Shown here piece after piece: positions 1,188 through 45,654 of a stretch of 64,000 nucleotides of DNA. The position numbers and the translations under genes are program-made. Each line of letters starts with the position of its first letter. Positions within the stretch are counted from its first letter, which is position 1. The stretch is from Tubulanus polymorphus (Eukaryota > Animalia > Nemertea): positions 1,426,001 through 1,490,000 of the forward strand of contig NC_134036.1 of the NCBI RefSeq assembly GCF_964204645.1, in the 5' to 3' direction. The notes beneath the pieces are model-generated. The model made no database searches, was not told the origin of the DNA, and saw only the letters and a list, made by a program, of their open reading frames with translations.

Positions 1188-4100
1188 ATGTATCGTGAAA
1201 GAAACATCTTTCGTTTTTTGCTGTTGTTGATTCTATGTTTATTCATCACAAACACATCAGGTGAGTTAATCAATAATCGTTGGTTCCAGAGCTGTTGAAA
1301 ACGTAGAAATCGTAAATTGTACGATTTCAATCCATAAGAGAGCACCGATGATAACCAGAGAAAGAAGAGAATTATTGTTGGAGAACAGCATTTGGAGAAT
1401 ATTTTTGTAAAATAATCTTCTTTTTGTCATTTCAGCAAAATGTTTTGGGAAGAGTTGTACTGGTTGGTTGTGTCATTGCAGTAATACAGCTGTGGACCAA
1501 TGTCCAATCAAGGGTCAGAATATAGATGGCGCTTTAACGTGTCCTGATCCTAATACTGCATGTGAGTCTACAATAAAAATTCCATATCCCTGGACACCGC
1601 CAGGATGGACCGGACCAGCTTGTCAAATCGGTAAGTTTTCTGTATCAACTGTGGGTCAGGTCAAATATCACTGAACCCCGGATTTTCCCCAGATTAACGG
1701 TTTAACTCAACTAATCCGTCATATGAAGCGGCTTTTATTGAAATGAAAATTTTGAAAAAATAAAAGGGAAAAAAATAAAATGAATCATTTTTTTAGAAAT
1801 CCTACCTAATTCACGTAGATCCAAATGGCGACGTTTTCCGTATTAGGGAGCTTAGTCCGAAAAACGTAAAAATAGGCCCATGATCTGTGATTCTTTTTTA
1901 CTTTAAGAAATATCATTTTTTGAAAATACGAAATATCACCATCTGGATGTCATGAAATTATTTCGTGGCTTAAAGGACGCGAATATAGTTTTTTTAATTT
2001 TACGTACATAAGCATAGAATCGAGCTACTTTTTTGTTGATTTTAGGGTGACATTTTCGACTGATATTTATAGTAGCTTAGTTTCGGCGACTACGTAACCA
2101 AAGCTAAGAAATGAAATGATGGAAATAAAATATTTATTTTGAAAATTCTATTCTGCTCGTTTTGTAGGTAACGTGGCTCGCGGTAAAACAGGTACGATGT
2201 CATCCGTTTATTCCGACTCATACGGCGGTAGTAGATGTACAGATGGTCAAACGCTAGCTCACATTGCTTATCTCAGTTATAAGGATATGTGTCACACTAA
2301 TGAGGATCAAGACGCCTGGATTAGAATTGATCTTGGAACACAATACGTGGTACATAAAGTTACACTTTGGGATAGACCAGACGCGGCTGATTGCGGCGAC
2401 GCTGAGTGGAGTGAGTACAAATTATAAATGTTGATTATATCATTGATTATTTCGGTCAAATCTGAAAAAATAGAACTTTTAACTGGAAAAGTCTCGTTAG
2501 ATATAAATTCCGTCTAGTAGATGAAATATCTTCAAAACTAACCAATCATTGATGGATTCTATGAGATGAGTTGAAATATTGAACCCTACCGAAACATCGA
2601 ACTCTGAGTCATCAATAATTAATATCAATGGTTAATATCGTTTAACTCATATCTGATACAAAGAATACGTTAGAAAAAGTCTGGTTGAATATAACCCCGT
2701 TTTAGTTTAGAGATTTTCAAAATCTACCAATTGTTGATCGATTCAGGAACTAAATTCCGCACTGTTTCACACAGTTTTCAGTTACCTTTGACTCGAGATG
2801 AAAATTAAAAAATCTAGAGACAAGATTTTTAACCTGAACTGTGGAAATGTGCGTGGGCCATGAATAATTTGTTTTCCGTTCGACATCAATGTATCTGCGG
2901 TATTCATGGGCGACTCTCTTCAACTTGTTTTCACGAAGTTAAATCTGATTTTCCCCTAGAAAAACGTGCGCGCATGTGCATGGGGAGGTGGAGGAGTTAA
3001 AATAACCGGAAGTCAAGCGAACGTACTTCATGCACGGCCCCTTTACTTATTTTTTCAAAAGAACTTGAACAGAATTGTTTTGCTCCCAAAGCAATCTTCA
3101 ACTTCCCTGATTTCGTGCATTAATTTTGTTTTGTCGGAGTTAACTGCAATATTTCAAAGCTCCTTAATCTTTTCTCAGAAAAACGCGAACGCAACATGGA
3201 GATTCGAGTTGGAAATGAATATGGCACCAATACAAGTATTTCTACATCTAACCAGAAATGTGCTTACCAGGGCCCCGCTCTCTGTGGAACACATAAAACA
3301 TTATCATGCAGCCCAGGTCCTATAGTTGGACGATTCGTCACCGTTCAACACAAGAACATTGGTAAGGCAGAGGCTCTCGCACTGGCAGAAATAGAAGTTA
3401 TCGGGTTCAAATATATCGGTAAGTTTTACATGACTATATATATGTGTAAACTATAAAGAGTATGGAAATGGATTTTGCTTTTCTCGAAAATATTCAGTCG
3501 CTTGTATATAGAATTTACCCCCGAACGAAAAATTTTGAAATGAAAAGAAGTCTCCCTTTATTACCAAAATTTTGTTTTTAGCACCCATTCATTTATGGAT
3601 TTATTATTGTTAAAATTAGATCGATTTATAAAAATATTCAGTGACTTGTAATGAGAACATATTTCCGAAAGATCGAATGATTCATATTTTTCGTATCAAA
3701 TTTGAATTTCTGTTTAGCACCCGGTAGTTGCAGTAAGGGATCGAACTCATTTGGATGTATGATTGAATGTAGATGTTACAACAGTGAAAGTTGTAACTAT
3801 TTGAGTGGTATCTGTGAATCTGGCTGTTCACGGAATTACATCGGAAAGTGGTGCGAGTCAGGTATATTACACTGAATCATAGATTCCTGGGAATCTCACT
3901 TCCTATTCCCGAAATATAGTAACCAATATGAATCGAAAATGATACCAAGTCAAAAAAACCGAAAGTAAAAGATCCTTACCCTTTATTTTATTCAAATCAC
4001 CTGAAATTAACATCTCAGATTTCTTTTTCAGAATTGAAATCGTTTTCTCAATTAACAAAATCTGCGCTGACAGATAACAGTGTAAAAGTCAGTTGGACCG

Positions 4101-5035
4101 CTTACTCGGGTTCTGTAGTAGATTCAGGTCGTGGTACTGTCAGCGTTCAGTATCTAGTCGTTTATCGTAAAATATCAGAAAACACTTGGACTAATCAGGA
4201 AACTGCAGGAGTCCTTACACATCGCACAATTACTGGTTTAACTCCTAATACCGGGTATAACATAGCTGTTAGACTACAGAAATTAGAGAACGGTCAACTT
4301 ATATCAACTGCGAGTCTGACTAGTACAGTATTAACTTTGTGTGCAGGTAAAACCCCTCATTCTAATAAACTCTTAATCATCAATTCAAACACAGAATTGT
4401 GTTGAACATGTTTGTTTTACTGTAGATCCATTAAACGGTCCTAAAGGTGTTCGTGTGGTGTCCACAGCGGTTGAGAACAGTAACACGTGGCCCCAGACAA
4501 CCAATCTGATACTTACATGGACCGTAAGTGTGCCTCAACCAGAATCACATAAATTCACCTGGGCCCGGTTTTATAGACTAGTGTTACCTTCAACCCGGGG
4601 CTAACTTAATTTATTTTCTTACTTTATTAACTAATTCACCTGATGTTCATTTATATCTATATGACAAGGGAAGAAAATTTGACCTTCCCTTTCAGTGACA
4701 CATGATAAAAACATGTAGTGAATTATAATTATGTTGCAGGCTTTAACTGCTGCAGAGTTACAGTGTGACGTCACTAAAGCTGTTTATCAAGTCGAGTATA
4801 AACAACTGAACGGACAAACATGGACCACAACAGCGGCGCAACCTACCGGCCACACACTAACAGGACTAGAACCTGATACTGATTATGAAGTTAGAGTTGG
4901 TGTAAAGAATGACGTCACTCAGAAATTCATTTACACCAAACCTAAAAGTTACAAAACGTCGACTGCGGGTAATTCAATCCCACATTAGATATAGCCAAAA
5001 CGAGAAACTTGAATAAGAGTAAATGTAGTTGGCTC

Positions 5036-5118
<83 letters not shown>

Positions 5119-8100
5119 TTGGAGAACAGCATTTAGAGAATGTTTTTTGTAAAACAATCTTCTTTTGTCATTTCAGTAATATGTTTTGGGAAGAGTTGTT
5201 CTGGTTGGGAGTGTCATTGCAGTAATACAGCCGTGAACATATGTCCAATAAAGGGACAGAATATAGATGGCGCTTTAATGTGTCCAAATCCTAACACTGC
5301 ATGTGAGTCTTCAATAAAAACTCCGTATCCCTGGACATCACCAGGATGGACCGGACCAGCTTGTCAAATCAGTAAGTTTTCTGTATCAACTGTGGGTCAG
5401 GTCAAATATCACTGAACCCCGGATTTTTCCCAGATTAATGGATTAACTCAACTAATCCGTCATGTGAAGCGGCTTTTATTGAAATGAAAATTTTGAAAAA
5501 ATAAAAGGAAAAATAATAAAATGAATTATTTTTTTAGAAATTCTTCCTAATTCACGTAGATCCAAATGGCGACGTTTTCCGTATTAGGGAGCTTAGTCCG
5601 AAAAACGTAAAAATAGGCCCATGATCTCTGATTCTTTTTTACTTTAAGAAATATCATTTTTTGAAAATACGAAATATCACCATCTGGATGTCATGAAATT
5701 ATTTCGTGGCTTAAAGGACGCGAATATAGTTCTTTAATTTTACGTACATAAGCATAGAATCGAGCTACTTTTTTGTTGATTTTATGGTGACTTTTCGACT
5801 GATATTTATATTAGCTTAGCTTCGGAGACTATGTAACCAAAGCTAAGAAATGAAATGATAGAAATAAGATATTTATTTTGAAAATCCTATTCTGCTCGTT
5901 TTGTAGGTAACGTGGCTCGCGGTAAAACAGTTACGATGTCATCCGTTTTGTCAATCCCTACGTTTACCGCTAGTAAATGTACAGATGGTCGGACGGTAAC
6001 TAAACCATATAAAGATCTATGTCACACTCGTTATGATCAAAACGCCTGGATTAGAATTGATCTCGGAACTCAATACGTGGTACATGAAGTTACACTGTGG
6101 GATAGAACAGACGCGGCTGGTTGCGACCTGCCGTGGAGTGAGTACAAATTATTAATGTTGATTGATCATCTAGGCCAAATATGATAGAAAAAAATATATA
6201 ACTTCAGCTCGAAAAGCCTGGTTGAATATAAACCAAGTTTAGATGAGTGATTTTTTCAGAAAAGTTTGACTCGAGATGAGTTGAAACTTTGAACTCTACC
6301 GGAATATCGAACTCTGAGTCATCAATAATCAATAATCTGTAAATAAAGTCAGTTCGACAACAATGTGTCTGTGGTATCCATGGATGACAACTTCATGAAA
6401 AATACGTTATTGGAAAATTTTGAATCAACTTTTTCAAACGTGTCAACATTTTCAGTCGATAACTATAAATTTGTGTTAGGGGCCGTGCGCCTGTCGAAAA
6501 CAATGAATTTATTTTTAGATTTGTTTTTCACAGAATTTGAATAGAATTGCTCTGCACCCAAAGCAATCTTCAGCTTCCCGGATGTCGTGCATTATTATTT
6601 GTTTTCATCTTTCAAAGCTTCTTAATTCTTTTTCTAAGAAAAACGTTCGCGCAACCTGGAGATTCGAGTTGGAAATGAATATGGCACCAATACAAGTATT
6701 TCTACATCTAACCAGGAATGTGCTTACCAGGGTCCCCCTCTCTGTGGTAGGCATAAAACATTAGCGTGCAGCCCAGGTCCTATAGTTGGACGATACGTCA
6801 CCGTTCAACACAAGAACATTAGTAATGCAGAGTATCTCAACCTGGCAGAAATAGAAGTTATCGGGTTCAAATATATCGGTAAGTTTTACATGACTATATA
6901 TATGTGTAAACTATAAAGAGTATGGAAATGGATTTTGCTTTTCTCGAAAATATTCAGTGACTTGTATATAGAATTTACCCCCGAACGAAAAATTTTGAAA
7001 TGAAAAGAAGTCTCCCTTCATTACCAAAATTTACCCATTCATTTAAGGATTATATTATTGTTAAAATTAGATCGATTTTCATAAAAATATTCAGTGACTT
7101 GTAATGGGAATGTATTTCCGAATGTTCAAACAGTTCATATTTTCGTATCAAATTTGAATTTCTGTTTAGCACCCGGTGGTTGCAGTAAGGGATCGAACTC
7201 ATTTGGATGTATGATTGAATGTAGATGTTACAACAATGAAAGTTGTAACTATTTGAGTGGGATCTGTGAATCTGGCTGTTCACAGAATTACATCGGAAAG
7301 TGGTGCGAGTCAGGTATATTACACTGAATCAGAGATTCCTTAGAATCTCGGTCCCAACTGTAAACGACTGAAAGTAAAGATCCTTGTTCATCTAAAACTA
7401 ACATCAATCTATTTTCAGAATTTAAGTTGTTTTCGCTATTAACAGAATCTGCGCTGACAGATAACAGTGTAAGAGTCGGTTGGACAGCTTACTCGGGTTC
7501 TGTAGTAGATTCAGGACGTGGTACTGTCAGCGTTCTGTATCAAGTCGTTTATCGTAAGATATCAGAAAAGACTTGGACTAATCAGGAAACTGCAGGAGTC
7601 CTTACACATCACACAATTACTGGTTTAACTCCTTATACCAGGTATAAGATAGCTGTTAGACTACAGAAATTAGTGAACGGTCAACTTATATCAACTGCGA
7701 GTCTGACTAGTATGACTAGTACAGTATTAACTTTGTGTGCAGGTAAAACCCCTGATTCTAATAAACTCTTAAACTGTAAATGAGTAAAACATGTTGCTGT
7801 CGTCATCAAGTAGATGTCAATTCACAGAATCGCATTACTTAATTTGTCTGTGGTGTTTATTTCAGTACCAGGACCTCCCGCTTCTCTCGACTACTCATTC
7901 ACAAGGGATACATTGAAAACTACATTGACATGGACTTTACCAAACAGTCCAAATTGTGATGTCATCAATTATTGGGTAGGAATTAACTTGTCCTGACCAT
8001 TAGAGGGCACCATCTGCGCTATACTGTAACGTGTCCCTATCTGTTTTCAGCTCACGTGTGAACCCATCAGTACAACTTCCACAACACCTTTAACAGACAT

Positions 8101-11100
8101 AAAAACAATCAACAAACCTAAAATCAAAGGCTCCATCACAACTTTAGACATAACGACGTCACTGATACCTTTTACTCAATACAACTGTTCAATGTTTGCC
8201 TCGAATAGTAAAGGGGAAGGGTCACCTGCCAGTGTTAGCTTTTGGTCAGGTGAGTAATTTGAACCCAATGACCTCAAGTATTCATTGATGTCACTTGTCA
8301 ACATTGTCACTTACTGATATTTCAGGTGAAATAACAATTCCCCTACTGGTTGTCAAGAAAGCAGCGATAACAAACACGACTGTTACACTTCAAATAACAC
8401 GTGTTAATACTGGAAACATTACGTAAGTGTCCTCTTATTTTCATCTATAAATAATGCATGATCTTATAAAACAATTTTTCTCTGATTTTCAGCGGTTACG
8501 AGGTGATCGTCAAGAAACATGATGGACCAATCAGCCGTCGCCGGAAGCGTGCAGTCAACCAATCACAGTACGTCTCGTACGGAGAAGCTAAACAGCGAGG
8601 ATTATCAGTTTATATTACTGCAGTTCTACCACCGAAAGTGCCCTCTGAGTTTATAGTTGGTGATACACGTGACTATTGTGGTTACTTTAATGCTCCTCTA
8701 GAAACTGGAAAATCTTACAGTTTTATTTTAGGAATCGTTGTCAATTATAACGGAGTGAGTTCATCTTGTCTTTGAATGTGAATTGTAGTTTCCAATTTGG
8801 AGGTGACTCTAGCCATTTTTTGGGGATTTTTCAGGAAACGTTTCGGCATTATCCACCAATAGAACAGCAAGAGAGAATCACTGTTCAAGCATCGTCTAGT
8901 AAGGCAGGGATAATAGGTGGCGTTGTGACAGTTGTTCTAATACTGTTATTGGTTGCTGTTGCTCTATATATTGTTTGGAGGTATGAGTAAATAGTGGCGA
9001 CCTCTATAGTCCAAGGCAAATCATTTGACAATCGCCCAATGCCCCTATTCTCACAAAAGTTCCCCCTCATTCAGTTACCCACTATATGGACGCTTTAACT
9101 TTTCAGACGCGGTGGATTCAAAATTAAACAAGCATCGAACAATGCAGAAATATCCATGGGGAATATTTCACCTTCTGATAAACCTATTGAAATACCTTTG
9201 GCGAGAGAAGAAGCAGAGGCTGTTTATGTGAATTGTCCTAAATCACCGAGACAAGAAAATACAGCTAGTGCAAATGCTGCATTTTCAAGAGGTTTGTCTC
9301 AAGACCGTGAGGTTTTGTAAAGTTGTAGCCTATTTTAACATTTAACACTATGATTCCTCTCCCTATAGTAAGCTCCGCGTATTTCAATATCTATGACGAT
9401 CCGAATGCTGTAGATGAAACGCAAGATGGCGAGGATCATCACTACGAAATCGCTTCTAAAGGCGCTACTATGATTTGTGACCTGTTGGGAGAGACCTTGA
9501 TGAAGACCTCTGATGAGTGGAAGAATATGAATGAAGAATTTCAGGTAAAATTGCTGGGAGGTTGCGACTGCTCGTGGGTAAGACATGTGATCATGTTCTG
9601 GATCTATTTTTTCTTTAGAGTGTTCTCAAATTCAGACGAGGATTGAGCGCCTGCGCTGAGACAGTGGAGAATCTTGAGAAAAACAGGTTTCCAAACATAT
9701 TGGCCTGTAAGTATTGCCTGGTCATTATATAGACATGAGTTCTGTCGTAAATACAAGAGTTGCCTTGTGAAACATCTCTATTGAGTTTCATTGACTTTGA
9801 GTGGTTTTTTCTAGATGATTCGACTAGAGTTGTTCTGGAACAAATCGGTGAAGATCCAACATCAGATTACATCAATGCCAATTATATTCGGGTGATAAAT
9901 CAATCCCTCTCTGCTCTTGAAAATGTTGCCACGTCCTCCTATTGTATATAAACGGAAATTCTGAATTTAATTTTCAGGGACTAACTGGTCATGTAATATG
10001 TATTGCTTGCCAGGGTAAGTCTCATGATTCAATTGTTGCGTGTTACTTGTGCGCTCACTCATCTAACTTGTTCTTTCAGCTCCATTGCTATCTACAATCA
10101 ATGACCATTGGCGGATGATCTGGCAAGAGAAATGTCCAGCTATCATTGTACTTACTGTTCTGACTGAAGGACAAGGCAAAGATAAGAAGGTTGCAAAAAT
10201 ACTCTAAGATGCTGAAGCGTAAACAGGCAAAATTTAGAAAAATAAGTACCGTTGATTTTTAACTTGCAGGTGAAGTATCATTTATATTGGCCAACAAAAC
10301 TGAACACGAAAGGTCGATATGGAGATATAACAGTAAAAGTTGCAAAGAAAATGGAAAAACACACTGAGCCTCCGGCTGCCGTACATTTCTTGTCCATTAC
10401 AAAGGTAATGATCATGTCATTGCTTTATCATGAGTGACCTAGTGTTGGTATTTCTGCTATCTATAAGCTTGGTTCAGATATCGATTTTAATAGACTCTCC
10501 CGATAAGTAACATTTCATTTATTTTATAGCGTGGCCACAAACAAGCACATAATCTATTAGTGTTTCACTATCGAGGATGGCCGGATCATGGTGTACCGTT
10601 CCCGGCTTTATCTGTTGTTCGTATGCAACAGTTCATCAAACAGCGTCTTACCGACCCGGATCAGGGACTTGTGCTGGTTCATGGCAGGTAAATTAATTTG
10701 AAATCGTCCAGTCCTTTACAGTTAAGGACACGTTTAGATATGTTATTGTTTGTGTTCTCAGTGCTGGTGCTGGAAGGACGGGTTGTTATATCGCAACGGA
10801 GCAGCTTCTTGAGAAAGCCAAGAAAGATGGACTTGTTAACGTATTCGACATGTTTAGGAAATTACGACAACAAAGACCAGAAATGATCCAAAATATGGTA
10901 AATCTTAATAAAGTTACTGCCTCTCATTTCACGTTTCCAAAATGGAAAACTTCAACGTGTTCCTTTATTACTATCTACTTCAGAAACAGTACATTCTCGT
11001 GCACCAGATTCTACTGGAGGAACTGATACTGGGACCAGTGGCATACACGACCACGAGTTTCAGAGAATCATACGAGGAAAGAAAGGCAACGCGACCAGTA

Positions 11101-12550
11101 TCTAAAAACGTGTCTGATAAAATAGAGGAACAATTTCTTGTACGTATTAAGATCAGCCAAAATGAGATGAAGGGTTTTGGATAACAAACAGATGGCAGCA
11201 ATGAATCCATTGACCCAGATAAACTAGATTTCAATTTTTTTCCTTGGTTTGGTTTTGAAGAAAATAATTACCCAATGCGTTGTTTTCTGATGCAGGTTTT
11301 GAAGGCATCGATTCCGATTCAGGACGAGGAATCACTAGCAGTGGCCAAACTACTCAACAATGTTAACAAGTCCCGATACAAAGACATCCTTCCCGAGGCA
11401 CAGTATCAACCGCAACTCTCACATAAAGGGTTCATCAATGCTTCATTTGTGCACGTGAGTTTGATTCTGAATTAATAGCTGTCCGTGGAATATCTGGTGG
11501 AGGGGGGCATTAATCCTCGATAATCTTCAGTTGAGATATCGATAAGTTATAAGAATCTGATTGAAATACTTTCCTTTTTACAGACGATCACAGATAAAAA
11601 CGTGTTTATAGCAACACAAAGTCCAATGGCAAATACTATTACTGACTTCTGGCAAATGATCTTTGACTATAACTGTGAAATTATTGTGATGATGCATCAA
11701 GAATATCCACAAGATCCGGTAAGGTGTATTCCTAGTCTAGCATCTAGTATACATAGGTCTGCTTTGTAGGTATCTTTTTCCAGAATACATCTTCTGATTT
11801 TAGACATATGCAAGTTACTGGCCTGCAGCTGGAAGCATCAAATGCAGTCCTTTTACAATCACTGTGGAGGAAGTTTCATTGCTCTGTAAGACCATCGTTC
11901 GCCGGGATTTGATCCTCAAAAAACAGAATGTATGTTGAGTTGTTTCGGTAGCTACTGTACAGAGAAATATGGCTGCATTTTTCGGAATTTCCTTCGACAT
12001 TGCTATTTACTATGACCTGATCAGATCAATTGTATTTCTTTGATTTCACAGGAATCGCATCAGATTCGTCAGATCCAGTTTTTAGGATGGCCTGAGGATG
12101 AGTCGGTTCCTAATTTACAACATCTATTCGAGTTTGTGAATCTAGTTACAAGAGAACACGTGACCAGTCCTATTGTTGTACATTGCATGTTCGTATCTTA
12201 GCAACATCAGTCAATTATTCAAAACAATATCACATATTCTATCGATTATGCAAATTTTACAGGGACAGCACAACGAGAGCAGGGTTATTTTGTGCGGCAT
12301 TTGAACTGATCACCAAGGCGCCATCTAGCGAACAAATCGATATTTATCACTGTATACAAAAACTACGAATGACTCGACCTCAATTCATTCCAAATTTGGT
12401 AAGAAATTAATCGATTTTCTTTGTATTTTCACGAGTTATTTTATTGATGTATTTTTCTTGTTTTCGTATTCATAGGAACAGTACAAGTTTCTACACGATC
12501 TGGTGATATTCTATTTACAAGGATTCGACACTTATGTGAACCTTAGTTAG
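1188..12550 (+). CDS. FTLD-EGF-FN3 receptor-type protein tyrosine (pseudo)phosphatase, copy A (two lectin modules, 34 exons, about 1836 aa)
   Basis: Manual splicing gives one continuous frame. Signal peptide 1188-1260 (MYRERNIFRFLLLLILCLFITNTS); Cys-rich 1436-1630; FTLD 2168-2410+3179-3418; EGF 3718-3861; FN3 4032-4346, 4426-4523, 4740-4968. Second module 5177-5371, 5907-6137, 6639-6878, 7170-7313, 7419-7742. FN3 7866-7975, 8051-8249, 8326-8422, 8493-8754 (RRRKR); TM 8835-8980; JM 9107-9291, 9369-9544; D1 9619-11139 (8 exons: KNRF, DYINAN, WPDHG, HGSAGAGR); D2 11296-12398; last exon 12476-12550 (..FDTYVNLS*). Exon sum is 5511 nt, divisible by 3. Confidence 0.88.
2168..3418 (+). CDS. F-type lectin (fucolectin, F5/8-C-like fold) domain A1, split over two exons
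   Basis: NVARGK..MSS..CTDG..CHT..WIRIDLG..V.LWDR.D ... IRVG..NQKC..C..GRFVTV..LAEIEV. The H-x26-R-x-D fucose-binding motif spacing is exact. Confidence 0.85.
5038..5116. repeat. (AT)n microsatellite in the intron at the module-1/module-2 junction of gene A
   Basis: About 39 perfect AT units; orthologous tract at 35222-35281. Confidence 0.98.
5907..6878 (+). CDS. F-type lectin domain A2 (two exons)
   Basis: Same framework as A1 with different loops. The second exon uses an AAG acceptor (6636-6638) instead of CAG. Confidence 0.82.
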
Positions 12551-13772: not shown

Positions 13773-13922
13773 GGGGTTGTTGCCGCTACGTGGCAGCACA
13801 ATACGGCTTTTTCGAATTCCAGCAAATCATACGAATGACGTTTAAATTTCGTTTACAGGCTAAGCCTTAAATGGAAAACTTAATATAAATGCCACTAGCA
13901 AATAACTACAAAAGAAAACATC
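13773..13922. mobile_element. Truncated MITE (left arm only); also at about 26194-26343
   Basis: Matches the left TIR and interior of the complete element at 43998-44260, then breaks at 'gaaaacatc'. Confidence 0.75.
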
Positions 13923-28451: not shown

Positions 28452-28457
28452 TAATAG

Positions 28458-28488
<31 letters not shown>

Positions 28489-28500
28489 GTATAATATTAA
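28452..28500. repeat. (AAT)n microsatellite
   Basis: AAT run that replaces about 125 bp present in the paralogous spacer (16041-16165). Confidence 0.85.
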
Positions 28501-34600: not shown

Positions 34601-35217
34601 CCCAGACAACCAATCTGATACTTACATGGACCGTAAGTTTGCCTCAACCAGAATCACATAAATTCACCTGGGCCCGGTTTTATAGACTAGTGTTACCTTC
34701 AACCCGGGGCTAACTTAATTTAATTTCTTACTTTATCAACTAATTCACCTGATGTTCATTTATATCGATATGACAAGGGAAGAAAATGTGACCTTCCCTT
34801 TCAGTGACACATGATAAAAACATGTAGTGAATTATAATTATGTTGCAGGCTTTAACTGCTGCAGAGTTACAGTGTGACGTCACTAAAGCTGTTTATCAAG
34901 TCGAGTATAAACAACTGAACCGACAAACATGGACCACAAAAGTGGCGCAACCTACCGGCCTCACACTAACAGGACTAGAACCATATACTGATTATGAAGT
35001 TAGAGTTGGTGTAAAGAATGACGTCACTCAGAAATTCATTTACACCAAACCTAAAAGTTACAAAACGTCGACTGCGGGTAACTTAAAAATGAATGACGAG
35101 ACCAGTTTAAACGCAAGAAATCCCACATTAGATATAGCCAAAACGAGAAACTTGAATAAGAGTAAATGTAGTTGGCTCATAGGCATTAGCCGAAACATTG
35201 CACAAATACATTTGCTC

Positions 35218-35283
<66 letters not shown>

Positions 35284-38200
35284 TTGGAGAACAGCATTTA
35301 GAGAATGTTTTTTGTAAAACAATCTTCTTTTGTCATTTCAGTAATATGTTTTGGGAAGAGTTGTACTGGTTGGGAGTGTCATTGCAGTAATACAGCAGTG
35401 GACATATGTCCAATAAAGGGTCAGAATATAGATGGCGCTTTAACGTGTCCAAATCATAATACTGCATGTGAGTCTACAATAAAAACTCCGTATCCCTGGA
35501 CACCACCAGGATGGACCGGACCAGCTTGTCAAATCGGTAAGTTTTCTGTATCAACTGTTTCTGCTGCAGTAAACCGGGGTCAGGTCAAATATCACTGAAC
35601 CTCGGATTTATATCAAATTAACGGATTAACTCCATGAAAGCCTTTACAAAAATAAATCTTAAAGAATTAGGAATGAATGATGTAAATTTCATTAGATTTA
35701 TCTCAGATTAACCGAATAACACTAAAACTAATCCGTATACGGATTAACGTCACTAATCCATAAGCGGGAAAAAAATTTATTGGTAAAAATATCATAAATT
35801 TATGAAACTTCCGGGAACTGTCGACGAACTGAGATCAACTCTTAATTATTTCATCGCGTAAAGAAAAAAATGTTAGTTTTGTTTAATTCTAGTTGAAATT
35901 GTGAAATAACTTTGAATCAATTTGTTTTTGTTCGTTTTGAAAATTCGTGAAATAATTCAAATCTCTTATTCACAAAATGTGTTTTGTAGGAAACGTGGCT
36001 CGTGGTAAAACAGTTGCAATGTCATCCATTCTCAGGATTGAAAGTGACTATCGCGGTAGTAAATGTACAGATGGTCAGATGGTAAGTGGAATGTGTCACA
36101 CTAAAGATAATCAAGACGCCTGGATTAGAATTGATCTCGGTGCTCAATACGTCGTACATGAAGTTACACCTTGGGATAGAAGAGACGTGACTGGTTGCAC
36201 CGATAACCCGTGGAATTCGTGGAGTGAGTACAAATTATTAATGTTGATTGATCATCTAGGCCAAATCTGATAGAAAAAATATATAACTTCAGCTCGAAAA
36301 GCCTGGTTGAATATAAACCAAGTTTAGATGAGTGATTTTTTCAGAAAAGTTTGACCCGAGATAAGTTGAAACTTTGAACTCTACCGAAATATCGAACTCA
36401 GAGTCAACAATAATCAATAATCTGTAAATAAAGTCAGTTCGACAACAATGTGTCTGTGGTATCCATGGATGACAACTTCGTAAAAAATACGTCATTGGAA
36501 TTTTGAATCAACTTTTTCGACGTGTCAACATTTTCAGTCGATAACTATAAATTTGTGTTAGGGGCCGTGCGCCTGTCGAAAACAATTAATTTATTTTTAT
36601 ATTTCTTTTTCAAAGAGTTTGAACAGAATTGTTTTGCACCCAAAGCAATCTTCAGCTTCCCGGATGTCGTGCATTATTATTTGTTTTCATCTTTCAAAGC
36701 TTCTTAATTCTTTTTCTCAGAAAAACGTTCGCGCAACCTGGAGATTCGAGTTGGAGATGAATATGGCAATGATACAAGTATTTCTACATCTAACCAGAAA
36801 TGTGCTTACCATGGCTTACCCCCTCTCTGTGGTACACATAAAACATTAGCATGCAGCCCAGGTCCTATAGTTGGACGATACGTCACCGTTCAACACAAGA
36901 ACATTGGCTACGCAGAGTCTCTCGCACTGGCAGAAATAGAAGTTATCGGGTTCAAATATATCGGTAAGTTTTACATGACTATATATATGTGTAAACTATA
37001 AAGAGTATGGAAATGGATTTTGCTTTTCTCGAAAATATTCAGTGACTTGTATATAGAATTTACCCCCGAACGAAAAATTTTGAAATGAAAAGAAGTCTCC
37101 CTTTATTACCAAAATTTTGTTTTAAGCACCCATTCATTTAAGGATTATATTATTGTTAAAATTAGATCGATTTTCATAAAAATATTCAGTGACTTGTAAT
37201 GGGAATATATTTCCGAATGTTCAAACAGTTCATATTTTCGTATCAAATTTGAATTTCTGTTTAGCACCCGGTGGTTGCAGTAAGGGATCGAACTCATTTG
37301 GATGTATGATTGAATGTAGATGTTACAACAGTGAAAGTTGTAACTATTTGAGTGGTATCTGTGAATCTGGTTGTTCACAGAATTACATCGGAAAGTGGTG
37401 CGAGTCAGGTATATTACACTGAATCAGAGATTCCTTAGAATCTCGGTCCCAACTGTAAACGACTGAAAGTAAAGATCCTTGTTCATCTAAAACTAACATC
37501 AATCTATTTTCAGAATTTAAGTTGTTTTCGCTATTAACAGAATCTGCGCTGACAGATAACAGTGTAAGAGTCGGTTGGACAGCTTACTCGGGTTCTGTAG
37601 TAGATTCAGGACGTGGTACTGTCAGCGTTCTGTATCAAGTCGTTTATCGTAAGATATCAGAAAAGACTTGGACTAATCAGGAAACTGCAGGGGTCCTTAC
37701 ACATCACACAATTACTGGTTTAACTCCTTATACCAGGTATAAGATAGCTGTTAGACTACAGAAATTAGTGAACGGTCAACTTATATCAACTGCGAGTCTG
37801 ACTAGTATGACTAGTACAGTATTAACTTTGTGTGCAGGTAAAACCCCTCATTCTAATAAACTCTTAAACTGTAAATGAGTTAAACATGTTGCTGTCGTCA
37901 TCAAGTAGATGTCAATTCACAGAATCGCATTACTTAATTTGTCTGTGGTGTTTATTTCAGTACCAGGACCTCCCGCTTCTCTCGACTTCTCATTCACAAG
38001 GGATACATTGAAAACTACATTGACATGGACTTTACCAAACAGTCCAAATTGTGATGTCATCAATTATTGGGTAGGAATTAACTTGTCCTGACCATTAGAG
38101 GGCACCACCTGCGCTATACTGTAACGTGTCCCTATCTGTTTTCAGCTCACGTGTGAACCCATCAGTACAACTTCCACAACACCTTTAACAGACATAAAAA

Positions 38201-41200
38201 CAATCAACAAACCTAAAATCAAAGGCTCCATCACAACTTTAGACATAACGACGTCACTGATACCTTTTACTCAATACAACTGTTCAATGTTTGCCTCGAA
38301 TAGTAAAGGGGAAGGGTCACCTGCCAGTGTTAGCTTTTGGACAGGTGAGTAATTTGACCCAATGACCTCAAGTATTCATTGATGTCACTTGTCAACATTG
38401 TCACTTACTGATATTTCAGGTGAAATAACAATTCCCCTACTGGTTGTCAAGAAAGCAGCGGTAACAAACACGACTGTTACACTTCAAATAACACGTGTTA
38501 ATACTGGAAACATTACGTAAGTGTCCTCTTATTTTCATCTATAAATAATGCATGATCTTATAAAACAATTTTTCTCTGATTTTCAGCGGTTACGAGGTGA
38601 TCGTCAAGAAACACGATGGACCAATCAGCCGTCGCCGGAAGCGTGCAGTCAACCAATCACAATACGTCTCGTACGGAGAAGCTAAACAGCGAGGATTATC
38701 AGTTTATATTACTGCAGTTCTACCACCGGAAGTGCCCTCTGAGTTTATAGTTGGTGATACACGTGACTATAGTGGTTACTTTAATGCTCCTCTAGAAACT
38801 GGGAAATCTTACAGTTTTATTTTAGGAATCGTTGTCAATTATAACGGAGTGAGTTTATCTTGTCTTTGAATGTGAATTGTAGTTTCCAATTTGGAGGTGA
38901 CTCTAGCCATTTTTTGGGGATTTTTCAGGAAACGTTTCGGCATTATCCACCAATAGAACAGCAAGAGAGAATCACTGTTCAAGCATCGTCTAGTAAGGCA
39001 GGGATAATAGGTGGCGTTGTGACAGTTGTTCTAATACTGTTATTGGTTGCTGTTGCTCTATATATTGTTTGGAGGTGCGAGTAAATAGTGGCGACCTCTA
39101 TAGTCCAATGCAAATCATTTGACAATCGCCCAATGCCCCTAAAGTTCCCCCTCATTCAGTTACCCACTGTATGGACGCCTTAACTTTTCAGACGCGGTGG
39201 ATTCAAAACTAAACAAACATCGAACAATGCAGATGTATCCATGGGGAATATTTCACCTGCTGATGAAGGTATTGAAATACCTTTGGCGAGAGAAGAAGCA
39301 GAGGCTGTTTATGTGAATTGTCCTAAATCATCGAGACAAGAAAATACAGCTAGTGCAAATGCTGCATTTTCAAGAGGTTTGTCTCAAGACCGTGAGGTTT
39401 TGGAAAGTTGAAGCCTAATAATGTTTTAACACTATGATTCCTGTCTATATAGAAAGCTCCGCGTATTTCAATATCTATGACGATCCGAATGCTGTATGCG
39501 AAACGCAAGATGGCGAGGATCATCATAACAAAATCGCTTCTAAAGGCGCTACTATGATTTGTGACCTGTTGAGAGAGACCTTGATGAAAACCTCTGATGA
39601 ATGGAAGAATATGAATGAAGAATTTCAGGTAGAATCGCCGTGAGGTTGGGACTGCGCGTTGGTAAGACATTTGATTATGTTCTGGATCTATTTTGTCTTT
39701 AGAGTGTTCTCAAGTTGAGACGAGGATTGAGCGCCTGCGCTGAGAAAGGGGAAAATGCTGAGAAAAACAGGTTTCCAAACATTTTGGCCTGTAAGTATTG
39801 CCTGGTCATTATATAGACATGGGTTCTGTCGTAAATACAAGAGTTGGCTTGTGAAACATCTCTATTGACTTTCATTGACTTTGAGTGGTTTTTTCTAGAT
39901 GATTCGACTAGAGTTGTTCTGGAACAAACCGGTAAAGATCCAACATCAGATTACATCAATGCCAATTATATTCGGGTAAGGAATCAATCCTTCTATGCTC
40001 TTCCAAAGGTTTTCCTGTCCTCCTATAGTATATAAACCGAAATTCTGAATTTAATTTTCAGGGACTAACTGGTCATGTGATATGTATTGCTTGCCAGGGT
40101 AAGTCTCATGATTCAATTGATTCGTGTTACTTGTGCGCTCACTCATCTAACTTGCTCTTTCAGCTCCATTGCTATCTACAATCAATGACCATTGGCGGAT
40201 GATTTGGCAAGAGAAATGTCCAGCTATTATTGTACTCACCGACCTGACTGAAGGACATGACAAAGATAAGAAGGTGGCAAAAATACTCTAAGATGCTGAA
40301 GCGTAAACAGGCAAAATGTAGAAAAATAAGTACTTTTGATTTTTAACTTGCAGGTGAAGTGTCATTTATATTGGCCAACAAAACTGAACACGAAAGGTCG
40401 ATATGGAGATATAACAGTGACAGTTGCAGAGAAAATGGAAACACACACTGAGCCTCCGGCTGCTGTACATTTCTTGTCCATTACAAAGGTAATGATCATG
40501 TCATTGCTTTATCATGAGTGACCTAGTGTTGGTATTTCTGCTATCTATAAGCTTGGTTCAGATATCGATTTTAATAGACTCTCCCGATGAGTAACTTTTC
40601 ATTTATTTCATAGCGTGGCCACAAAGAAGCACATAATCTGTTAGTTTGTCACTATCGAGGATGGCCGGATCATGGTGTACCGTTCCCGGCTTCATCTGTT
40701 GTTCGTATGCAACAGTTCATCAAACAGCGTCTTACCGACCCGGATCAGGGACTTGTGCTGATTCATGGCAGGTAAATTAATTCGAAAATCTCCCAGTCCT
40801 TTACTGTTAAGGACAAGTTTAGAAATGTTATTGTTTGTGTTGTGTTCTCAGTGCTGGTGCTGGAAGGACAGGTTGTTATATCGCAACGGAGCAGCTTCTT
40901 GAAAAAGCTAAGAAAGATGGACTCGTTAACGTATTCGACATGACTAGGAAATTACGACAACAAAGACCAGAAATGATCCAGAATATGGTAAAATCTTAAT
41001 AAATTTACTGCCTCTCATTTCACGTTTCCAAAATGGATAACTACAACGTGTTCCTTATTACTATCTACTTCAGAAACAGTACATTCTCGTGCACCAGATT
41101 CTACTGGAGGAACTGGTACTGGGACCGGTGGCGTACCCGACCACGAGTTTCAGAGAATTATACGAGGAAAGAAAGGCAACGCGTCCCGTATCTAGAAACG

Positions 41201-42650
41201 TATCTGATAAAATAGAGGAACAATTTCTTGTACGTATTAAGATCGGCCAAAATGAGATGAAGGGTTTTGGATAACAAACAGATGGCAGCAATGAATCCAT
41301 TGACCCAGATAAACTAGATTTCAATTTTGTTTCCTTGGTTTGGTTTTGAAGAAAATAATTACCCAATGCGTTGTTTTCTGATGCAGGTTTTGAAGGCATC
41401 GACTCCGATTCAGGACGAGGAATCACTAGCAATGGCCAAACTACTCAACAATGTTAACAAGTCTCGACACAAAGACATCCTTCCTGAGGCACAGTATCAA
41501 CCACAACTCTCACATAAAGGGTTCATCAATGCTTCATTTGTGCACGTGAGTTTGATTCTGAATTAATAGCTATCCGTGGAATATCTGGTAGAGGGGGGGG
41601 GGGGGGGCATTAAGCCTCGATAATCTTCAGTTGAGATATCGATAAGTTATAAGAATCTGATTGAAATACTTTCCTTTTTACAGACGATCACAGATAAAAA
41701 CGTGTTTATAGCAACACAAAGTCCAATGGCAAATACTTTTACTGACTTCTGGCAAATGATCTTTGACTATAACTGTGAAATTATTGTAATGATGCATCAA
41801 GAATATCCACAAGATCCGGTAAGGTGTATTCCTAGTCTAGCATCTAGTATACATAGGTCTGCTTTGTAGGTATCTTTTTCCAGAATACATCTTCTGATTT
41901 TAGACATATGCAAGCTACTGGCCTGCAGCTGGAAGCATCAAATGCAGTCCTTTTACAATCACTGTGGAGGAAGTTTCATTGCCCTGTAGGACCATCGTTC
42001 GCCGGGATTTGATCCTCCAAAAACAGAATGTATGTTGAGTTGTTTCGGTAGCTACTGTTCAGAGAAATATGGCTGCATTTTTCGGAATTTCCTTCGACAT
42101 TGCTATTTACTATGACCTGATCAGATCAATTGTATTTCTTTGATTTCACAGGAATCGCATCAGATTCGTCAGATCCAGTTTTTAGGATGGCCTGAGGATG
42201 AGTCGGTTCCTGATTTACAACATCTATTCGAGTTTGTGAATCTAGTTACAAGAGAACACGTGACCAGTCCTATTGTTGTACATTGCATGTTCGTATCTTA
42301 GCAACATCAGTCAATTATTCAAAACAATATCACATATTCTATCGATTATGCAAATTTTACAGGGACAGCACAACGAGAGCAGGGTTATTTTGTGCGGCAT
42401 TTGAACTGATCACCAAGGCGCCATCTAGCGAACAAATCGATATTTATCACTGTATACAAAAACTACGAGTGACTCGACCTCAATTCATTCCAAATTTGGT
42501 AAGAAATTAATCGATTTTCTTTGTATTTTCACGAGTAATTTTATTGATGTATTTTTCTTGTTTTCGTATTCATAGGAACAGTACAAGTTTCTACACGATC
42601 TGGTGATATTCTATTTACAAGGATTCGACACTTATGTGAACCTTAGTTAG
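31635..42650 (+). CDS. FTLD-EGF-FN3 receptor-type PTP (pseudo)phosphatase, copy C (two lectin modules with identical FTLDs, 34 exons)
   Basis: Signal 31635-31707; 31887-32081; FTLD 32548-32781+33279-33521; EGF 33826-33969; FN3 34141-34455, 34535-34632, 34849-35077. Module 2: 35342-35536, 35990-36223, 36721-36963, 37265-37408, 37514-37837. Furin exon 38587-38848; TM 38929-39074; D1 from 39703 (ATT CAT GGC AG at 40761-40771); last exon 42576-42650. Confidence 0.86.
35222..35281. repeat. (AT)n microsatellite at the module junction of gene C
   Basis: 30 perfect AT units. Confidence 0.98.
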
Positions 42651-43997
42651 AATTATGATTCGAAATGCTGAAGAAAAGCAAACAATCAGAAAAGGGAATC
42701 TGAGTAAAGGCACCTGAACTGCTACTTTACACCTGGCATTAACCGAGTGATGGCGCCACTAGCTGGAACACGAGGCAACGAAATTCACTTACTAGTTTAA
42801 TCATGTATCTTTTTAAATTGTTTTATTCAAAATATTGCTCGAACTCTTGGACATAAAGATTAACGTACTTTTCGTATTGAGGAACCTTAGGTCTACTCCA
42901 GAAACTGTCCGGTTTTATTGTGTTTATGTTTACGATTACTTTTTTGTTCATGAATTATATTCATATATAATTTATATATCAGCTATCTAATTATGTATCT
43001 ATAAAACTGAGTGTTGTATTATGTTATAATTTCAATGTAAATAAAGATATATTCAGATATTTCTCAATAGAAATAGATTTCAATATAAAGATGATTTATG
43101 TAATTATCACTGTTAATTAGATATTCTTAGTTAATATCATCACTCATATTTGTAATCACCGCGTTCACATCGTGTATCATCCACTTCCTTCCCTCACTGT
43201 TATCCACCTATCCACCTAATATACATATACACTAGTAAAAGCGAAAACTCGTAATTTCTAGTATAAAATAAACATAACTACTGACAGTAAGTTACCGTAA
43301 AATAATTCATAATGACACTGTAATTGTACTGTGATTATCAATTCAGTCACTCTTAATTAATTATCTTTAATTAATCTAATTACTCATAATTTTCATCCGG
43401 TAAAGTTTCTACTATACATGTTATAATATATCAGCCGATATAGTATTTTTTTGTTGAAACTTTCGAGCCATGCATATAGTCTATCATATTACATGTATAT
43501 CTGTTTTTATATCAGTGCTTGTTTATCAGATGTTAATGATTATTATTATTTCTCTTTCTCACTTTGTTATATGTATGTAGAAATGTCAGTCACAAACAGT
43601 GCAATTGTTTATACTGAATAAATATTTGAATTTGAATTGTATTACACTAGTAGCTAAAACTCGTAATTTCTAGTATAAAATCAAGTTAACTACTCACAGT
43701 TAGTTGTTACCTGTTGTCACGTTTATTGATTATACTCACAGTCCTTATATAAATATAACTGATTATTTCAATTTCACAATGAACTCGAATATTGTACATA
43801 ATCTAGAATAAAATATATAGATTTTCCTGATTTGATTGTGTTTGTTTTTGTGTTTTCTGTTTTGTTTTTGTCTTGTTTTACGATTGAAGATTCTGGGTTC
43901 CTTCAGGTTTTATATCTTATTTGTCATGAAAATAAACAACTTTCTGCTGCCCTGCGACTCGATCACACCTATAGGGGGCAGAGGGGGTTTATTTGAA

Positions 43998-44260
43998 GCG
44001 GTGTTGTTGCCGCTACGTGGCAGCACAATACGGCTTTTTCGAATTCCAGCAAATCATACGAATGACGTTTAAATTTCGTTTACAGGCTAAGCCTTAAATG
44101 GAAAACTTAAGATAAATGCCACTGGCAAATAACTACAAAAGAAAACATCGCGAAAAAAATAAAATCAATTCGGGACTCGACCCTAAATATCAAAACGTAA
44201 CGGTTCCGTAGAGGTTCGAAAAAGCCGTATTGTGCTGCCACGTAGCGGCAACAATCCCGC
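43998..44260. mobile_element. Complete MITE of about 260 bp with perfect 40-bp TIRs (superfamily not assigned)
   Basis: ttgttgccgctacgtggcagcacaatacggctttttcgaa (44004-44043) is the exact reverse complement of 44215-44254. Confidence 0.88.
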
Positions 44261-44970
44261 AGTACACGATTAAACCAAGTTGACGCGACGATCGAAATCG
44301 ACTGACGCTTCGTTTGTTTTTGGCTCTGGTTTATCTATGAGGTGTATTTGACGGAACCAAACGCTACTTGAAAATGATCTATACACATTGTTGTTATTGA
44401 CACATCTTGGAAAAGGTGAGTGAGTGTATAATCTTTGAGAAAATGCTTACAGAAAGTTTGAAGCGACAGATTTTCATTGGATTGTAATTGATGGGCGTGA
44501 AAATTGATACACACTTCCGGTAACGAACGTTAGGCCTATATCCCTACCAACAATATGTCTCCATGCCTACCAACTGAAGTTTGTTACGTAGGCATGGAAA
44601 CATATTGTTAAACTTTCAAATCATGGAGTCACTTCTCTTCATTTAACCCCTCCTTCAATACAGTTTCAAATGGATTAAAAAATGATGATTTAGGTCGACT
44701 GCCTGTCCTTTCTGGTCCTATTAAGACCTTTATCAGGTATGTACTACCAAAACTGACTGAGCTTGGCCACTCGGAATGCTCTCAAGTCAGGTTGAAATAG
44801 ATATTAGCTACATTGCCACATCAAGGCCATACTAAAATGGGCGTATTGACTCCACACCTGTTTAATGTGGGCTAGATTGATTGTGGGACCAACGAGACGT
44901 GAGACTAATAAGAACCCGCGAGGAAACCAACGGCATCCTTCTCTTCAATTGATTCTTTTTCATCGTTCAG

Positions 44971-45654
44971 AAAACGTTTTGGCATTATCCACCCATAGAT
45001 CAACGGCAAGAGATAATCATTGTTCGAGCACCGTCTAGTAATGCAGGGATAGTAGGTGACAATGCAGGAATAATAGGTGGCGTTGTGGCTGGTTTTATAT
45101 TATCATTGGTGCCTGCTATTCTAGTTCTATGTGTAGTATGGAGGTACGAGTGAATAGTGGTGACCTCTGTAATTAAAATCACGTATCATTTGACAACCGT
45201 CCGATGCCCCTTAACTTTTTTCACATCTTGCAGACACAGCAGGTTCAAAACTAGGCAAACAACGAACAATGCAGAAATAGAGTATGATTCATCTTCTGTT
45301 GAAAATATTGACAGACGGCCATTCGCAAGACTAGAGGTTATCCCAAGACAAGAACATGTTAACCCTGCATTATCAATAGGTTTGTATATAATGAAGCTTG
45401 AAAAGTTAAAGCCTAATAATATTTTTAACAACAAAGATTCTTCTTCACGTAGAAAGCTCCATGTATCACAATATCTATGATGATCCGGAAACGGAATACG
45501 ATCAGCAAGATGGCGAGGAAAAGTTGCTACTGTGATTAATCGTGACCTCTTGTTTATTTTCTATTTATAGGAACAATACAAGTTACTGAAGTTACTGCAT
45601 GATTTGATGATATTGTATTTACAAGGACACGACACTTATGTGAACCTTAGTTAG
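44971..45654 (+). pseudogene. Diverged fourth RPTP paralog remnant ('copy D'): TM, juxtamembrane and terminal exons only, both PTP domains deleted; pseudogene or PTP-less cassette
   Basis: 44971-45143 KTFWHYPPIDQ..GIIGGVVAGFILSLVPAILVLCVVWR; 45234-45379 RHSRFKTRQTTNNAEI..; 45453-45535 ESSMYHNIYDDPETEYDQQDGEEKLLL*; 45571-45654 EQYKLLKLLHDLMILYLQGHDTYVNLS*. Splice sites are homologous to those of A-C. Confidence 0.75.

Follow-up and report, generated by a model that had tools for sequence, protein, structure and literature searches.

A likely lineage-specific tandem expansion of F-type-lectin receptor phosphatase genes with glycine in place of the catalytic cysteine in the nemertean Tubulanus polymorphus

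The subject of this study is a window of 64,000 nucleotides from the genome of the palaeonemertean Tubulanus polymorphus (Nemertea; genome size 268 Mb), which corresponds to 1.426-1.490 Mb of contig C12 (NC_134036.1, positions 1,426,001 to 1,490,000 of RefSeq assembly GCF_964204645.1), and the receptor-type protein tyrosine phosphatase (RPTP) genes arrayed in it. We consider it likely that the three genes A, B and C and one relic, copy D, belong to a lineage-specific tandem expansion of RPTPs with F-type-lectin ectodomains (lectin-RPTPs), that the clade carrying glycine (Gly) instead of the catalytic cysteine (Cys) in the first phosphatase domain (D1) signals non-catalytically, and that the ligands would be fucosylated. 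Sequence comparisons indicate that the family derives from an older lophotrochozoan RPTP with an F-type (fucose-binding) lectin ectodomain. The proteins are type I membrane proteins, with tandem protein tyrosine phosphatase (PTP) domains, D1 and D2, behind a single transmembrane segment.

Self-BLAST of the window returned blocks of 4.8-8.3 kb that are 94-98% identical, including introns and intergenic DNA (1-1652 and 30450-32103, 96.6%; 5898-12617 and 35981-42717, 95.4%; 7798-16043 and 20217-28453, 97.2%; 20217-25038 and 37893-42717, 94.4%). The tandem paralogy proposed in a preliminary description of this DNA, made from its sequence alone, was therefore borne out. That description had counted three intact-looking genes and a remnant. 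Genes A and C are intact, but gene B has a GG splice acceptor before exon 31; the remnant is present, but it is more than the piece with a transmembrane segment and tyrosine (Tyr) motifs described before. The extents of the four copies are as follows.

1188-12547, forward strand: gene A, 34 exons with open frames and GT-AG splice sites (exon-by-exon mapping)
17264-24968, forward strand: gene B, 27 homologous exons, a single module (second module missing)
31635-42647, forward strand: gene C, 34 exons, two modules; GT-AG at 32 of 33 junctions by script, at the last by eye
44966-45654, forward strand: copy D, a relic with homologues of exons 18 (transmembrane), 19, a truncated 20 and the last exon, 34

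RefSeq already contains models of all three genes, automatically named "receptor-type tyrosine-protein phosphatase T-like". Gene A is an exact match to XP_074661537.1 (P0222, 1836 amino acids), which aligns to it in 34 blocks over 1833 of 1836 residues, and gene C corresponds to XP_074661690.1 (P0160, 1836 amino acids) in 34 blocks with zero mismatches. The model of gene B is XP_074661693.1 (P0228, 1205 amino acids), an exact translation.

The general architecture comprises a signal peptide, one or two modules of Cys-rich, F-type-lectin, EGF-like and FN3 units, further FN3 domains, a PTPRU-type FN3 with the motif RRRKR, the transmembrane segment, a juxtamembrane region with Tyr motifs and a pair of PTP domains. 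Gene A has two modules, each consisting of a Cys-rich unit, an F-type lectin domain (FTLD), an EGF-like unit and two FN3 domains, and these are followed by FN3s, the PTPRU-type FN3, the transmembrane segment, the juxtamembrane region, D1 and D2. Pfam and similar searches were run on single exons and full-length analyses on RefSeq proteins. In the exons and the three RefSeq proteins, Pfam detected F5_F8_type_C_2/F5_F8_type_C, fn3, Fn3_PTPRU (1e-12 to 1e-13) and two Y_phosphatase domains, so the lectin, FN3 and tandem PTP content described earlier stands. The EGF part of that description fared less well: the match is weak (EGF_laminin, E=0.06), and the EGF-like label is based solely on the GWxGxxC ending. 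The N-terminal Cys-rich unit gave no match in the Pfam search, and its confidence in the AlphaFold2 (AF2) model is below 40. RRRKR, a predicted furin-type site, is present in A, B and C, as the preliminary description had proposed.

The D1 signature of all three genes reads VH-G-SAGAGRTG, and HGSAGAGRTG is a STYX-type Cys>Gly change. Positions of the D1 codon and of the D2 signature are listed below.

10683-10685, forward strand: GGC (Gly) codon of gene A D1, in place of the catalytic Cys (exon 26/27 translation; coordinates by homology with gene B)
23104-23106, forward strand: GGC (Gly) codon of gene B D1, in place of the catalytic Cys, read directly
40767-40769, forward strand: Gly codon of gene C D1, in place of the catalytic Cys (IHGSAGAGRTG in P0160)
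24473-24819, forward strand: D2 signature region of gene B, VHC/MDSTTRAG split by an intron, WPE instead of WPD; genes A and C likewise

The earlier statement that D1 lacks its catalytic Cys was confirmed by reading the GGC codon directly. In gene B, the D1 exon ends with ...CAT GGC AG/gtaaat and the next exon starts with T GCT GGT GCT GGA AGG, a Ser codon being split by a canonical intron, and four DNA runs gave no report of an alternative base at the Gly codon. Because the catalytic Cys is replaced by Gly, D1 would be unable to act as a cysteine phosphatase. The WPDHGVP motif and the Q loop are intact. For comparisons among paralogues, in-frame exon codons were concatenated, genomic paralogues were covered over the first 10 kb of each stretch, and several paralogues were represented by RefSeq proteins only. 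The ratio of nonsynonymous to synonymous substitution rates (dN/dS) is ~0.23 for both D1 (10 paralogues) and D2 (9 paralogues), and the reading is open in 9 of 10 D1 sets and in all nine D2 sets. D1 and D2 are under purifying selection, and a conserved D1 without its Cys is consistent with a role other than catalysis, as a scaffold or in phosphotyrosine binding. In A, B and C, D2 reads VHCMDSTTRAG; it keeps Cys and Arg, has WPE and lacks the Gly-rich P-loop. The preliminary description had proposed a scaffold rather than an enzyme, which suits the conserved Cys>Gly D1 but is less straightforward for D2.

The family is much larger than the window. When the lectin exon of gene B was compared with the genome, 27 strong matches were obtained, mostly on C12, and the D2 exon gave 22 matches at 70% identity or more, also mostly on C12; this supplies the genome-wide count that the preliminary description had called for. 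The C12 matches form clusters at 0.27-0.32, 1.07-1.12, 1.32-1.47 and 2.5 Mb, so that the window covers only the distal portion of the array. C9 and C10 each carry one copy, two D2-exon matches lie on the small contig C57, and RefSeq contains at least 12 clusters of these T. polymorphus proteins at 90% identity. Roughly, the family consists of about 20 genes, mostly on one chromosome.

The distribution of the Gly residue follows this layout. D1 reads HG at eight loci (C12 1.07-1.12 Mb, C12 1.32-1.43 Mb and C9) in addition to genes A, B and C, and HC in the C12 0.27-0.32 Mb cluster (P0001 and P0155) and in the degenerate-looking C10 copy. The outgroup D1 is HCSAGxGRTG in T. polymorphus P0057, which is located on another chromosome, and in Lineus, Lingula, Owenia and Limulus. 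In a maximum-likelihood tree of D1-D2, nine Gly proteins form one clade (100/99) on a branch of 0.29 next to two Cys paralogues, and the Tubulanus expansion is separated from the conserved homologues by 1.37 substitutions per site. The tree indicates a single Gly clade nested among Cys-bearing relatives, with one origin of the Cys>Gly change. The C10 copy (L015, C10:9372001-9382000) keeps the D1 Cys within flanking sequence of the Gly-clade type; a stop in its D1 exons and gaps in its D2 exons make it a probable pseudogene, and it may mark the state just before the change.

The combination of a lectin ectodomain with an RPTP also occurs in Lineus longissimus, Lingula anatina and a conserved T. 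polymorphus gene on another chromosome. Like these lophotrochozoan receptors (Lingula XP_013415221.1, Lineus XP_064624769.1 and T. polymorphus XP_074641439.1), the window genes have a Cys-rich lead, an FTLD-like F5/8-C domain, FN3s, Fn3_PTPRU, two PTP domains and a C-terminal TY(A/S)NF-type motif. The conserved receptors have an active-type D1 with HCSAGxGRTG, whereas D1 in the window has Gly, and lectin identity between the two groups is ~30%. No tandem expansion is known for the conserved receptors, and those of Lineus and Owenia also carry a Kringle domain. Tandem expansion, loop hypervariability and the Gly-for-Cys D1 are specific to the present family. A homologue search with P0057 returned no further lectin and PTP protein outside T. 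polymorphus, a result of limited word-index sensitivity that is not evidence of absence. A literature search for an F-type lectin or discoidin domain joined to a receptor PTP found nothing on a lectin-RPTP fusion, its expansion or a dead D1. The novelty suggested earlier therefore holds in that we found no paper describing the combination, but not for the architecture as such, which Lineus and Lingula share, nor for the genes, which RefSeq had already modelled. The RefSeq names "PTPRK/T-like" conceal both the lectin and the dead D1.

The ectodomain features that bear on ligand binding and processing are listed next.

2168-3418, forward strand: lectin domain 1 of gene A (FTLD exons 2168-2410 and 3179-3418)
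5907-6878, forward strand: lectin domain 2 of gene A (FTLD exons 5907-6137 and 6639-6878)
18171-19215, forward strand: lectin domain of gene B (FTLD exons 18171-18401 and 18988-19215), His/Arg/Arg triad retained
20955-20969, forward strand: furin-type RRRKR of gene B, within the PTPRU-type membrane-proximal FN3 exon 20912-21173 (Fn3_PTPRU 3.4e-13)
21254-21965, forward strand: transmembrane and juxtamembrane part of gene B (transmembrane exon 21254-21402; Tyr-motif exons 21529-21713 and 21790-21965)

Sequence and modelled structure both identify the lectin as a true F-type lectin domain. In phmmer searches against the PDB, the lectin matched striped bass FBP32 (3cqo, 2.2e-12), eel agglutinin (1k12, 1.5e-9) and lectinolysin (1e-7), and the fucose-binding His and both Arg residues line up in the alignments with FBP32 and eel agglutinin. 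The AF2 model has a predicted local distance difference test score of 70-85 in the FTLD core and is poor in the remainder. With this model, F-type lectins took all ten top places in a Foldseek search of the PDB (1k12, 3cqo, lectinolysin and S. pneumoniae SpX), and the TM-score by target was 0.72 for 1k12 and 0.66-0.69 for most others. The domain resembles eel agglutinin and its eFL isoforms, FBP32 and oyster bindin in its fold and in the residues of its His/Arg/Arg triad. Unlike these secreted or acrosomal lectins, it heads a transmembrane receptor with a phosphatase fold.

Alignment of 13 FTLD first exons revealed a near-invariant framework, NVARGKTVTMSS, CTDGQ, CHT and AWIRIDLGTQYVVHEVTLWDR, in which neither the His of CHT nor the first Arg, that of WDR, varies in any of the 13. 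A conserved K-R at the start of the next FTLD exon aligns with Arg86 of eel agglutinin. The segments that match the complementarity-determining regions CDR1, CDR2 and CDR4 of eel agglutinin, together with the residues right after the His, are hypervariable in sequence and length, and an entropy map of 13 modules places the variability in the lectin loops. Pooled Nei-Gojobori estimates gave a dN of 0.027 and a dS of 0.117 for the framework (dN/dS 0.23), compared with 0.49 and 0.43 for the pooled loops (dN/dS 1.15; CDR1 1.6, CDR2 0.96 and CDR4 1.3), and dN is 0.02-0.10 in the other ectodomain exons. The 18-fold excess of dN in the loops relative to the framework is robust, and the earlier claim that the loops are far more divergent than the rest was upheld. 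A loop dN/dS above 1 is not robust because loop dS is also raised, likely owing to the indel-rich loop alignment, to escape of the loops from conversion, or to both. The loop values are compatible with diversifying selection and also with relaxed constraint plus escape from conversion. Variability of CDR1 and CDR2 with indels around the fucose pocket, in multigene or recombining families, is likewise a feature of known F-type lectins (PMC5712786).

Such diversity raises the possibility, favoured in the preliminary description, that the receptors serve innate immunity or another form of non-self recognition (of microbes, symbionts or allogeneic cells), the loops providing a repertoire of glycan specificities and the Tyr motifs giving activating or inhibitory signals in immune-type cells. 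Tandem arrangement, birth-and-death decay and gene conversion would be in keeping with this, as would hypervariable CDR loops (CDR1 dN/dS up to 1.6) around a conserved fucose triad, YxN motifs accompanied by one motif resembling an immunoreceptor tyrosine-based inhibitory motif (ITIM), and the interleaving of transmembrane immunoglobulin-superfamily (IgSF) gene copies in the array. F-type lectins are documented in self/non-self recognition, with isoforms that vary in CDR1 and CDR2 (PMC5712786). The same signatures, however, are found in gamete-recognition and adhesion families, and oyster bindin is itself an F-type lectin (PMC5712786); the loop dN/dS is not clearly above 1. We regard an immune role as a rather doubtful, tentative explanation.

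The cytoplasmic Tyr motifs are relevant to how a receptor with a dead D1 might signal. The juxtamembrane region contains AVY(V/E)NC and SAYFNI, and the tail ends with DTYVNLS. Both YxN and SxYxxI motifs are present in the juxtamembrane region of the Gly clade and neither in the two Cys paralogues examined (P0001 and P0155). The Tyr motifs claimed in the preliminary description are present, but its "ITIM-like" element amounts to a single SxYxxI match, the recurrent motif being YxN. The C-terminal TY(A/V)N(F/L) is shared from Limulus and Lingula to the window genes and is ancient; it resembles the Grb2-binding Tyr789 motif of PTP-alpha. In P0165/P0235 (C12 ~1.32 Mb, L007), a juxtamembrane repeat unit of ~25 residues is expanded, with TY(L/V)N in each unit, and P0165 has 21 YxN motifs overall, mostly in the repeated unit. 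P0164 and its isoforms lack PTP domains and stop after a tail of Tyr motifs. Such variants suggest that docking capacity, rather than catalysis, has been under selection.

Two known pseudophosphatases provide a framework for D1. STYX has an HGX5R signature and is inactive, a Gly>Cys change restores its activity, and it binds phosphorylated partners and competes with active phosphatases (PMC9464862). The window genes are similar to STYX in that the catalytic Cys is replaced by Gly in an otherwise intact signature. They differ in that STYX is a small soluble protein of the dual-specificity fold, whereas here the change lies in D1 of a classical receptor PTP with the WPD and Q loops intact. PTPRU is a receptor that binds substrates even though both of its PTP domains are inactive (PMC7320164). 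As in PTPRU, both domains of the present proteins are predicted to be inactive, with D1 keeping a substrate-binding fold (PMC7320164). Unlike PTPRU, which is inactive through structural rearrangements, the family would be inactive by loss of the nucleophile (Cys>Gly).

We propose a signalling scheme in which the lectin domains would bind terminal fucose and the loops would set the fine specificity for the surrounding glycan. The ectodomain would be furin-processed, as in R2A and R2B RPTPs. The HGX5R D1 would act as a STYX-like phosphotyrosine-binding or substrate-sequestering module, which may compete with Cys-bearing paralogues, and Grb2-type SH2 adaptors would dock on YxN motifs phosphorylated in the juxtamembrane region and the C-terminus. 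The sensed glycans could be foreign, as in immunity or in contact with symbionts or prey, or they could belong to the animal itself, as in adhesion or the recognition of tissues or gametes.

The second of these alternatives gains weight from the vertebrate R2B RPTPs (PTPRK, PTPRM, PTPRT and PTPRU), which the family resembles in its type I topology, FN3s, PTPRU-type FN3 with a furin-type site, tandem PTP domains and similar D1. The receptors might accordingly act in adhesion, between cells or to the matrix, or in the recognition of tissues, neurons or gametes, with the lectin in the place of MAM-Ig and fucosylated glycans of the animal itself as ligands. The best scores of D1 by itself are those with the D1 domains of PTPRK, PTPRT and PTPRM (211, 200 and 189 bits), Fn3_PTPRU carries its furin-type site at the R2B position, the conserved Lineus and Lingula homologues, whose D1 is of the active type, suggest that the ancestral role was one of housekeeping signalling, and PTPRU sets a precedent for an R2B receptor working as a pseudophosphatase (PMC7320164). 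Around 20 paralogues with hypervariable lectin loops would nevertheless be unusual for an adhesion RPTP, the branch from the conserved homologues is very long (1.37 substitutions per site), and MAM and Ig domains are missing: Pfam searches of P0160, P0222 and P0228 gave neither. Instead of MAM-Ig, the N-terminus consists of Cys-rich, F-type-lectin and EGF-like units, which are sometimes duplicated. Further differences from R2B are the juxtamembrane region rich in Tyr motifs and the ~20 tandem paralogues in place of one gene. Judged by the presence of MAM-Ig and of an active D1 (HCX5R is absent), the family would fall outside R2B. We think a role in adhesion or in recognition of own glycans possible, though we doubt it.

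Comparison of the copies revealed sequence exchange and partial decay, for which two further features are relevant.

32401-33564, forward strand: intragenic conversion tract of gene C (lectin 1 compared with lectin 2)
24222-24223, forward strand: GG splice acceptor of exon 31 (D2) in gene B, where genes A and C read AG

In the 3' halves of the genes, exons are 96-97% and introns 94-96% identical, in agreement with the near-identity of cytoplasmic exons and introns noted earlier. Genes A and C are 98.5-99.5% identical over exons 14-17, where B is at 84-92%, and A and B are 99-100% identical from exon 21 through 34. The best-matching locus changes exon by exon, and opposite-strand loci 350 kb away are among the best matches. 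Within gene C, a single mismatch in 1163 positions separates lectins 1 and 2, with the intervening FTLD intron included, against a divergence of 2-4% in the flanks. Sequence passes between the paralogues through gene conversion or unequal recombination. Before exon 31, the acceptor reads TTTTGG/ACA in gene B and TTTTAG/ACA in A and C; the gene B reading is that of the assembly, at a site of low read depth. The RefSeq protein of gene B runs from exon 30 into intron 30 and stops at 24188, by which most of D2 is lost; as exon 31 has 126 nucleotides and phase 0, its skipping would preserve the frame. Copy D has lost all PTP exons through an internal deletion and also lacks all ectodomain exons. 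Its last exon ends with DTYVNLS followed by a stop and is 99% identical to that of the paralogue at C12 1.07 Mb (L004). The splice lesion of gene B and the relic D represent birth-and-death decay.

Decay of this kind could in principle extend to the whole clade, so that the Gly-clade genes would be functionless duplicates decaying after loss of the nucleophile and similar only through conversion from functional copies. The lesion and truncated model of gene B, relic D, the C10 copy with its stop and gapped exons, and several short RefSeq models in the clusters are of the type expected. Set against them are the open D1 sets (9 of 10) and D2 sets (all nine) with a dN/dS of 0.23, and the 34 open exons with canonical splice sites in genes A and C. 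The Gly state is also clade-wide after the 0.29 branch and is followed by short conserved branches, and the sole Cys-bearing donors have diverged too far to have supplied the conversion tracts. General decay is therefore very unlikely in our estimate, and a maintained, non-catalytic receptor family is the better account.

Upstream of the window lie twins of genes C and B, in the order C' and then B' (C12 1371573-1382400 and 1387790-1394000; RefSeq P0159/P0231 and P0163/P0220). The lectin exon of gene B recurs 56 kb upstream with a protein identity of 100%, that of gene C recurs 87 kb upstream, likewise identical in protein, and the cytoplasmic exons of the twins are mosaic (89-100% by exon). 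P0163 was considered as the model of gene B and rejected: it is the twin at C12 1.387-1.394 Mb, and gene B is P0228. Raw reads from a different sample gave ~7x depth on the part specific to gene B, as expected for 1.93 Gb of reads and a 268 Mb genome, and a higher depth where the paralogues are more than 98% alike. In this other DNA sample, many sites are variant, and paralogue cross-mapping is possible. In twelve of its raw DNA reads, gene-B-like sequence is joined to a loop of the 'NEYGTNT' type at 19032, exactly at the variable loop in the second FTLD exon of gene B. These reads indicate a mosaic allele, or else a paralogue, unassembled or other, in which the loop has been swapped.

If the copies were assembly artefacts, whether haplotigs or wrongly joined repeats of just one or two genuine genes, recurring lectin exons such as those of genes B and C would be expected, and the depth of gene B is about single-copy despite its twin. 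Depth shows no halving, however. Gene C differs from L010 by exon (89-100% identity), P0163 and gene B differ at ~10 scattered cytoplasmic sites (single residues or short runs), and the lectin loops differ among the two lectins of A and those of B and C. The twins also stand in another order, with other neighbours, on one contiguous contig. We find an artefactual origin extremely improbable; the ~7x depth and the mosaic exon differences speak for real copies.

Several points weigh against a family of non-catalytic fucose receptors. D2 retains CX5R, so that residual D2 activity is possible, and inactivity of the whole protein is something that we infer. The Arg-Arg spacer of the fucose triad has 12-17 residues and lies in a variable loop, compared with 6 in eel agglutinin; with this longer and variable CDR4 spacing, fucose binding is plausible and not assured. 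Loop dN/dS is near 1 with raised dS and indel-rich alignments, which falls short of demonstrating positive selection. With gene B, one of three in the window, damaged, part of the array may be decaying. The four runs cover introns and contain no splice joints, which identifies them as DNA; the basis for expression is the RefSeq models only, with no RNA run on record. Binding, inactivity and localisation are predictions from sequence. A family of fucose-lectin receptors signalling without D1 catalysis nevertheless remains the likely explanation.

Receptor PTPs are usually orphans. Since the ectodomain of this family is recognisable as a lectin, and the monosaccharide pocket of such lectins is known, a ligand search on glycan arrays is straightforward. 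The family also offers a natural experiment in the conversion of a receptor phosphatase into a non-catalytic scaffold, with Cys-bearing sister genes on the same chromosome as controls. A bolder proposal is a nemertean-specific repertoire of ~20 fucose-lectin receptors in which the hypervariable CDR loops would provide many glycan specificities, and the STYX-like dead D1 and the multiplied YxN motifs would together capture phosphotyrosine and recruit adaptors in place of catalysis, forming an undescribed class of invertebrate non-self receptor; we deem this unlikely as a whole. If loop diversity does serve the recognition of foreign glycans, the family would add a new type to the few diversified invertebrate recognition families, and immunity in Nemertea is almost unstudied.

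IgSF genes are interleaved with the RPTP genes. An IgSF gene with three Ig-like exons (weak Pfam Ig_3 and I-set matches) and its own transmembrane exon lies upstream of RPTP genes C and A (window positions 28940-30734, also 121-285 and 16608-16894), and upstream of gene B just the first Ig exon is left. The first Ig exon has a distinct frameshift in each of two window copies. An Ig exon is located upstream of six RPTP genes in the C12 1.32-1.47 Mb array and therefore belongs to the repeat unit. For genes A and C, a reading of these Ig exons as 5' exons of the RPTP genes was considered and rejected, since their own transmembrane exon follows and they precede the RPTP signal-peptide exon. A related Ig family is found at C3 22.8-23.2 Mb and on C9.

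The distal part of the window contains tandem repeat arrays at 53217-53736 and 59199-59517 (offsets ~105 bp) and at 60231-61032 (period ~81 bp). The repeat at 60.2-61.0 kb lies inside a 298-codon open reading frame, for which the Pfam matches are only low-complexity-like. The first neighbour downstream of the array that is not a family member is a carboxylesterase-family gene, represented by a 445-codon open exon at 50078-51412 on the reverse strand (COesterase 1.6e-132).

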